Under the pieces are notes generated by a model that did not search any database, was not told where the DNA came from, and was given only the letters and a program-made list of their open reading frames with translations. From NCBI GenBank assembly GCA_907165135.1, contig OU015567.1, positions 15,686,001 to 15,750,000 of the forward strand: 64,000 bases of DNA, given 5' to 3'. Both the position numbers and the translations under genes were made by a program. Source of the stretch: Oikopleura dioica (lineage: Eukaryota; Animalia; Chordata). This document shows positions 12,719 to 13,690 of this stretch, in pieces (the first letter of the stretch is position 1; each line of letters starts with the position of its first letter).

Positions 12719-13690
12719 TTATTTTCGTATTCTTATATTCCAGCGGACAAAAGACGAATCTCCTTTGTGTTTGACCATTCCGGTTGAATCTGGCGTCAAC
12801 TTTTTCGCCGAGTTGTAGCTCTTCCCATCATACAAGTCAATATCGTCCGCGTCGGCTTGAAAGTCGACGCGTTTTCTTAAAATAAAACTCTCAAATTCAA
12901 AAATCAATACCGTTGAAAGTAAGCCACAGTTTCCAGAATTGCCCGTCGCCGCCGTAGCTTTTGTCGCTTGATTGATGTCGTATTGTCCAGCCAGCTTCCG
13001 TCACTTCTAAATTTTTGAATTGATTAAATTTTATTCTGGATGAAAATCGCGTCCAAACAAAAATCAAAAAATAAAAATGCGATTTTATCCAATTCCTTCA
13101 AATTGAAATTATTTCCCAAGCCAGCTGCCATTGTTTTCAGAACTCGTCGCACTGCTGCTTCTTTGTGGCTGGATCGTTTATCGGGCAAGTCCTTGAAAAA
13201 CCAAGTCCATTGATTTCAGGATTTTCCCCAAAAGAAGAACGAAGATTTTCCATCTCAGCAGTCTTTTTCTTGTTTTCCTTTGAGTCAGTTTCAAGTTTTC
13301 CTACGTACAGGTTTTGGTGTTTTTTCTTCTTCTCTTCTTGTTTCGAAATTCCTTCAGTCGTTTTTGTTATTCTTTCAGTATTATTGTTATGTTTTTCTCT
13401 GAGCTGCTTGAGATCTGCGATTTCTTCTTTCATCTCTTTTAAAAAGCACTCGGTCGTTTTTCGGACATCTTCGATCTGAATATCACGCTCCTGATTCGCC
13501 AATTCTGTGGTTTCTTTGAACATCTCAAGATCAGCGACTCTTTTTCCAATTTTCTATTTTTCTTTTTCAACTCGTTTCTTTCTTGCTGCAGATCGAACGC
13601 AAGAAGTCGAAAGGTCTCATTGTCTTTTTCAAGCTGATCTATTCTCTTAAGAATCGGCTGGATCACAGAATTATTGATTTGGGAACTCAT
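12719..13690 (-). pseudogene. Paralog 4: coiled coil + same C-terminal module, no kinase domain visible; probably pseudogenised
   Basis: Coiled-coil ORFs 13439-13690 and 13137-13523 are followed by [56 protein letters not shown]. Single-base frameshifts in homopolymers at ~13543 and ~13198. Both module splice acceptors read AA instead of AG. No HRD/DFN motifs seen upstream; further 5' exons may lie at 13690-14020. Confidence 0.75.

Follow-up and report, generated by a model that had tools for sequence, protein, structure and literature searches.

Evidence for inter-paralog exchange within a short C-terminal cassette of a clustered gene family in Oikopleura dioica

What kind of history can leave four copies of one short gene segment related to each other in all three possible ways within less than half a kilobase? 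The question is raised by a window of 64,000 nucleotides on chromosome 2 of the chordate Oikopleura dioica (contig OU015567.1), the whole stretch of DNA analysed here, which holds four copies of a cassette with 80-84% mutual identity (blastn; MAFFT alignment). A preliminary description of this DNA took the conflicting groupings to mean that no single tree explains the cassette, and that short-tract gene conversion or recombination shuffles its loops between dispersed paralogs. The copies and the kinase exons associated with the first of them lie as follows, in coordinates of the window.

5357-5799, (-) strand: cassette of copy 1 (L006), kinase subfamily K-a, located by blastn
5704-6219 and 6293-6457, (-) strand: kinase exons upstream of copy 1 (L006), partial match to PF00069
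12718-13161, (-) strand: cassette of copy 4 (L001), without kinase, coiled-coil type
37724-38109, (+) strand: cassette of copy 2 (L009), kinase subfamily K-d
62350-62774, (+) strand: cassette of copy 3 (L013), kinase subfamily K-c

The family to which these four belong numbers at least 19 full-length paralogs, fragments being extra. A whole-genome search of the OKI2018_I69 assembly located 19 full-length cassette copies and ~5 partial ones on chromosome 2, every one of them within ~300 kb (15.55-15.86 Mb of a 16.16-Mb scaffold) and 0.3-0.6 Mb from the chromosome end, together with ~9 far more diverged family members outside the cluster. In 14 copies a Ser/Thr kinase domain precedes the cassette and falls into one of four deep subfamilies, and in five (copy 4, L008, L011, L012 and L019) the kinase is replaced by a coiled-coil region that is homologous among them. 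PF00069 matches the exon at 6293-6457 under its curated cut-off, only a fragment having been scanned, and the protein P0001 (chr2.g8377) bears PF00069 and PF07714. The closest solved relatives of the kinase are NEK1, PDK1 and DCLK1 (E ~1e-22), and its subfamily is not clear-cut. Among the coiled-coil-type genes, L008 and L011 (15653420-15655147) form a tandem pair with cassettes ~1.3 kb apart. In L012 (15812859-15813977, minus strand; L012:1494-2612) both introns are free of stops, leaving a single open frame of 373 aa, and its intron 2 reads CGA where the others have two in-frame TGA.

The family is largely unannotated in public gene models. A 171-aa open reading frame upstream of copy 1 matches P0001 in a word search, and word searches with this frame and with the protein P0005 returned two public O. 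dioica models and nothing else. P0001 (286 aa; L017, ~15617.6-15621.0 kb) stops just after the kinase and is missing the cassette, a truncation for which the GA-AG intron described below is the probable cause, and of 1.84 billion representative proteins P0005 (chr2.g4538) is the one model found in which the domain is spliced correctly. A literature search found no paper on the cassette family in O. dioica. Two marine metagenome contigs carry related cassettes: L028 (ENA ERZ27264886, 574 bp) is 83% identical and cluster-like, with homology that begins within intron 1 and unrelated sequence upstream, and L037 (JGI 3300009436, 2720 bp) is 71% identical. Exact-pattern and protein-pattern scans of JGI metagenomes gave no cassette match.

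The anatomy of the cassette was drawn from the 19-copy alignment and the reading frames. Over ~0.45 kb it comprises the 3' end of a first exon (exon A), which reads ..AVRRVLKAMAAG..FNLK, followed by intron 1, a 39-codon exon B, a 36-nt GT-AG intron 2 and a 51-codon last exon C. The conserved 5' region of intron 1 lacks GT, and the frame demands a phase-0 junction directly after ..FNLK; intron 1 is therefore GA-AG. This is supported by P0005, which has its junction at the same place, by the known abundance of such introns in O. dioica (PMC7072748), and by the distant paralog L032, where GT stands exactly at the donor position of intron 1. Seventeen copies are intact over the cassette, L002 carrying a frameshift besides copy 4. 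Exon C opens, over ~30 nt (12840-12870 in copy 4), with a CG-rich palindrome, in which a 7-nt arm and a 10-nt spacer are followed by the reverse complement of the arm. It contains MluI-like and SalI-like sites and is present, nearly invariant, in every copy, in a genome of 38% GC; a 27-mer over it occurs 21 times in the genome with up to three mismatches, always in the chromosome 2 cluster, and its 3' arm recurs in intron 1.

The protein domain that the cassette encodes resembles little in public collections. Its exons were analysed singly, with the spliced model P0005 standing in for the whole domain. Searched one by one, none of the cassette exons matched Pfam. A profile search of the 1.84 billion representative proteins gave six matches, all of them O. 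dioica-like or unspliced read-throughs. No solved structure matched the C-terminal domain, the ESM Atlas held no usable match (TM <= 0.46), and a single-sequence AF2 model of P0005:240-369 was unusable (pLDDT 45.8). Homology of the variable domain to any recognition domain was not found in Pfam, the profile search or the Atlas, and the public model P0001 has no signal peptide.

Copy 4, which supplies the fourth member of the conflicting quartet, is resolved into the following parts.

12719..12876, (-) strand: exon C, with the stop codon at 12719-12721 (translation; 17-copy protein alignment)
12877..12910, (-) strand: intron 2, 34 nt as against 36 nt in the others (splice-site table)
12911..13028, (-) strand: exon B, FxxxxNLEVTEAGWTIRHQ...GDGQFWKLWLTFN, start set by the frame and P0005
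13029..13095, (-) strand: intron 1, GA-AG in the family (frame, phase-0 junction)
13096..13700, (-) strand: start of the C-terminal domain (..AAVRRVLKTMAAG..FNLK) and coiled-coil N-terminal region (three-frame translation)

The coiled-coil region of copy 4 is homologous to those of L012, L008, L011 and L019, and tblastn found no kinase upstream. This copy is most likely a pseudogene, because a deletion of 7 nt breaks its first domain exon (a 7-column gap in the alignment) and the coiled coil carries at least one other frameshift; the acceptors of both introns read AA in place of AG. Its cassette exons B and C remain open and are as close to the other copies as functional ones are. Some 500 bp downstream of its stop lies a MITE-like inverted-repeat element of ~190 bp with arms of ~25 nt (12040-12240), after which several copies of a short motif of the GTGTCCCAAAC type occupy 12360-12560.

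In the MAFFT alignment all three pairings of the four copies do occur within the cassette, just as the preliminary description had reported. Patch A, in exon B, groups copies 1 and 2 against 3 and 4 by a 3-nt indel, present as an insertion in copy 4, and by an M/L codon. A T/G site in intron 2 and the next loop, in exon C (..DG against ..TG), group 1 and 4 against 2 and 3, and patch C, also in exon C (PDQ..Y against PDS..F), groups 1 and 3 against 2 and 4. Over the whole cassette there are 39 quartet-informative characters, divided into 15 for 13|24, 13 for 14|23 and 11 for 12|34. Of 38 pairs of adjacent informative characters, 17 favour one and the same pairing, a weak clustering (permutation test, p = 0.067). 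Taken alone, this argument is weak and is not diagnostic of recombination, because simulations on one tree also yield all three pairings: they did so in 60 data sets that kept the real layout of site rates, with the rarest pairing averaging 5.0 of 21 informative sites. The real quartet is richer in informative sites than this, with 33 substitutions compared with 21. The assertion that no single tree will serve is not borne out by the quartet by itself, matched as it is by simulations free of recombination, and is supported for the 19 paralogs, whose segment trees are incongruent. When seven of the quartet characters are scored in all 19 copies, 18 of the 21 character pairs show all four combinations, and an identical complex 3-nt insertion is found in coiled-coil, K-b and K-c genes.

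A similar caution applies to the PHI test, which had been suggested as a check. Over the 19 copies it returned p <= 0.0003 in windows of 50-200 nt. However, when recombination-free data were simulated along the best single tree, each position keeping its own rate, 98% of the replicates gave p<0.05, with z of -2.81±0.65 compared with -3.30 observed. The signal arises because slow framework and fast patches lie in blocks, and PHI was rejected as evidence of recombination once simulations preserved that layout. This carries a general warning, namely that PHI and 'no single tree' arguments yield false positives where fast and slow sites are arranged blockwise.

Exchange is supported by tests that are insensitive to the arrangement of fast and slow sites. 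In likelihood tests, separate topologies for segments of the cassette were compared with one shared topology, branch lengths and models being kept separate throughout. Null distributions were obtained with AliSim data that mimicked gaps and site rates, under simple nucleotide models that may understate the real heterogeneity. At the scale of the main segments (alignment columns 1-89, 90-316 and 317-508) the separate trees gained 71.5 lnL units (76.5 with full search), compared with 15.5±8.8 and a maximum of 35.6 in the simulations, none of which (0/60) reached the observed value. At a finer scale, with exon B, intron 2 plus 5' exon C, and 3' exon C as segments of ~115 columns each, the gain was 91.1 against 24.6±10.9 and a maximum of 55.6 (0/100). 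Including all the full-length paralogs thus leaves a significant signal of recombination. Every segment also rejected each foreign segment tree in AU tests (p <= 0.003, delta lnL 51-114).

Shared tracts exceed the single-tree expectation in the same way. In a GENECONV-like analysis the top tract score was 21.3 as against a simulated maximum of 18.6 (0/60), and the ten best tracts averaged 14.8 as against 10.7±0.9 (0/60), the longest identical tracts falling in the slowest-evolving part of the cassette. The clearest candidate, from pairwise alignment, is the following.

37900-37994, (+) strand: candidate conversion tract in copy 2, 95 bp identical to 62578-62672 in copy 3

It runs from the end of exon B through the whole of intron 2 to nucleotide 41 of exon C, without a single difference in columns where the 171 pairs of copies differ on average at 10.7 positions. 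The flanks of these two copies differ at 69 of 262 columns on the left (26%) and 47 of 151 on the right (31%). Likewise, L007 and L009 show one difference in 109 columns. Incompatibility between sites matches the single-tree simulations over distances of up to 25 nt (ratio 0.99-1.06) and exceeds them over 26-300 nt (ratio 1.13-1.21, z up to 2.9), a profile that exchange in short pieces would be expected to produce. The short-tract part of the original proposal, resting on tracts of 95-109 bp, incongruence at ~115 bp and excess incompatibility only beyond ~25 nt, is accordingly likely, and is less firmly shown than exchange between dispersed paralogs as such. When the analysis was confined to silent sites (introns, third positions and UTR; 254 columns, 93 informative), a data set of low power, incongruence was 46.0 compared with 26.0±11.6 and was not significant (8/80). 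The fine-scale conflict therefore lies largely on replacement sites, and parallel selection on loop residues may add to the mosaic at its finest scale.

Comparison of the cassette with the rest of the same genes, made like the other exchange analyses on paralogs within one haploid assembly, shows how sharply its history departs from theirs. Silent divergence (pS) is 0.68-0.75 in the last kinase exon, ~0.6 kb upstream, compared with 0.25 for exons B and C (0.20-0.24 if framework codons alone are counted), and is intermediate, 0.48, in exon A. Among the 19 copies mean pairwise divergence is lowest in intron 2, at 0.071, and is 0.124 in intron 1; it is 0.50 in the 3' UTR. The kinase exon gives a tree of four subfamilies with support of 100/99/98/88. 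The cassette trees are rejected by this exon by 200-300 lnL units, and the kinase tree in turn by the cassette data (p-AU 0.002). Copies of one kinase subfamily are on average as far apart in the cassette as copies of different subfamilies, at 0.196 and 0.198 respectively (label permutation p = 0.27), so that the kinase-subfamily signal is wholly lost in the cassette. For the four copies of the window, the nearest relative switches subfamily from segment to segment. How far apart two copies lie on the chromosome has no bearing on their cassette distance (r = -0.06), and inside the cluster exchange depends neither on spacing nor on relative orientation. Recombination between dispersed paralogs, as originally proposed, is in this way supported by tree incongruence, AU tests, long shared tracts, the three-fold deficit of silent divergence relative to the kinase exon and the loss of subfamily signal.

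Uniformity of the introns might reflect constraint on their sequence, and the two introns differ in this respect. In the distant paralog L030, intron 2 has another length and another sequence, and in L037 it is only 72-75% identical; its near-invariance in the cluster is therefore the product of homogenisation and not of deep constraint. L037 retains the 3' half of intron 1 even though its exons have diverged more, and this half may be under constraint. Shuffled sequences fold about as stably as the pre-mRNA does (z = -1.13). In the exons, pN/pS reaches 1.53 at eight hypervariable codons of exon B and 1.41 at nine of exon C, and is 0.16-0.29 at framework codons, these being crude pooled Nei-Gojobori counts over codon classes picked by their variability. 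Silent divergence is itself raised at the hypervariable codons, where pS is 0.36-0.41. This would be expected if the loops are old variants held by selection, or patches that escape homogenisation.

The explanation we favour, with a probability of roughly three in four, is exchange between paralogs that is limited to the ~0.45-kb cassette and accompanied by selection for variety in the loops; the exchange part of this explanation is well supported. Repeated non-reciprocal exchange between copies, whether as interlocus gene conversion or as ectopic recombination, would keep the framework and introns of the cassette alike, and would at the same time erase the genes' own genealogy within it and re-assort its variable patches. 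Selection for variety would then hold ~17 loop codons highly polymorphic. The tracts probably measure tens to ~100 bp, and the events, which could be conversion or crossover, may extend to the present day.

The same mosaic could in principle be homoplasy, if the cassette had been homogenised once, long ago, or had spread a single time onto genes already present, and the copies had since diverged independently in a star-like manner, with repeated mutation and parallel selection among few allowed residues at hypervariable codons. Indeed, the cassette tree is star-like, its internal branches making up 14% of the total length, and this history would accommodate the three pairings and 'significant' PHI values of simulations without recombination, the non-significant incongruence at silent sites (8/80) and the pN/pS of 1.4-1.5 at loop codons. 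It is nevertheless improbable, since both incongruence (above all 60 and all 100 single-tree simulations) and shared tracts (above all 60) exceed what such divergence generates, and since it must account for 95 bp of identity shared across deep subfamilies by two genes whose flanks are 26-31% diverged, and for an identical complex indel across three deep subfamilies. Furthermore, the initial homogenisation that it requires is inter-paralog exchange itself. Dispensing with exchange altogether, strong purifying selection on nucleotides, for instance on GA-AG splicing signals or RNA structure, might keep framework and introns alike, as suggested by the 3' half of intron 1 kept in the 71%-identical wild copy and by the near-invariant CG-rich palindrome with which exon C begins. 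Yet constraint slows change and would neither scramble topology nor erase subfamily signal, intron 2 is not kept in the distant paralogs or the wild copy, and the pre-mRNA fold is unremarkable (z = -1.13), which together leave this account with a very small probability.

Smaller still is the chance that the pattern is an artefact in which short-read polishing or haplotype merging copied sequence among paralogs. The OKI2018_I69 assembly was built from Nanopore reads, polished by Pilon with MiSeq reads and processed with HaploMerger2, from an individual that is ~3.6% heterozygous (PMC8008620), so that opportunities for such copying existed. However, the copies are ~18-20% apart, far above heterozygosity, variable patches flank each conserved block within read length, the independent wild contig L028 has the same framework with loops of its own, and the silent deficit and scrambled genealogy extend to all 19 copies. 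Equally slight is the likelihood of programmed or somatic diversification, in which expressed kinase genes would receive templated conversions from the pseudogene and kinase-less copies; copy 4, a likely pseudogene whose cassette exons are nonetheless open and as similar as those of functional copies, and the existence of five copies without kinase would suit such a scheme, but germline exchange accounts for everything seen. On a related reading, with a donor library of kinase-less and pseudogene copies from which short templated conversions, possibly somatic, re-assort loops into expressed kinase genes, cassette exchange would constitute a diversification system and be more than a by-product of evolution. 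This reading, too, is highly unlikely, if marginally less so than the one just described. The conversions that it envisages would possibly be favoured by the lack of classical end-joining repair in O. dioica, which is said to rely on microhomology-mediated joining in place of classical NHEJ (PMC12426944).

Exchange between germline paralogs coupled with loop selection would have significance beyond this locus. A small C-terminal domain that has a uniform frame and variable loops, and that kinase and non-kinase genes exchange freely, would qualify as a candidate recognition system, and the cassette family offers a compact natural case in which to measure interlocus conversion. O. dioica has the smallest genome of free-living animals and belongs to a lineage of chordates with a reduced immune gene set.

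Several known families invite comparison. At MHC class I and II loci, short-tract interlocus and interallelic conversion coexists with homogenised introns and hypervariable peptide-binding codons. The O. dioica cassette is similar in that the selected codons vary more than the introns and framework do, motifs recur among the copies as a patchwork, and pN/pS exceeds 1 at contact-type codons where silent divergence is also raised (0.36-0.41 compared with 0.20-0.24). It differs in that the protein is unrelated, being a cytosolic kinase or a coiled-coil protein with a small domain of no known fold, and in that the data are paralogs of one haploid genome and not population alleles. In plant NLR clusters, exchange is confined to the recognition (LRR) part. 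As in those clusters, the tree of the signalling part remains clean in the O. dioica genes, and it is the recognition-like part that is recombined and subject to diversifying selection, but the genes have neither NB-ARC nor LRR, the cassette is only ~130 codons long, and the likeness is one of sequence pattern.

Clustered paralogs built as mosaics of shared elements, in an animal that lacks adaptive immunity, also recall the Sp185/333 (Trf) genes of sea urchins and the FREPs of Biomphalaria, for the latter of which somatic change has been reported. Those proteins are secreted and have known immune induction, whereas P0001 of O. dioica is without signal peptide. A position near the chromosome end, with exchange independent of distance and orientation, is shared with subtelomeric families such as the var genes of Plasmodium, the VSG genes of trypanosomes and the subtelomeric genes of yeast; unlike var and VSG, the O. 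dioica family consists of host animal genes and not parasite surface antigens, and no expression switching is known for it. The scrambled pattern described here is familiar from families of the MHC, NLR, FREP and Sp185/333 type, and is new for O. dioica.
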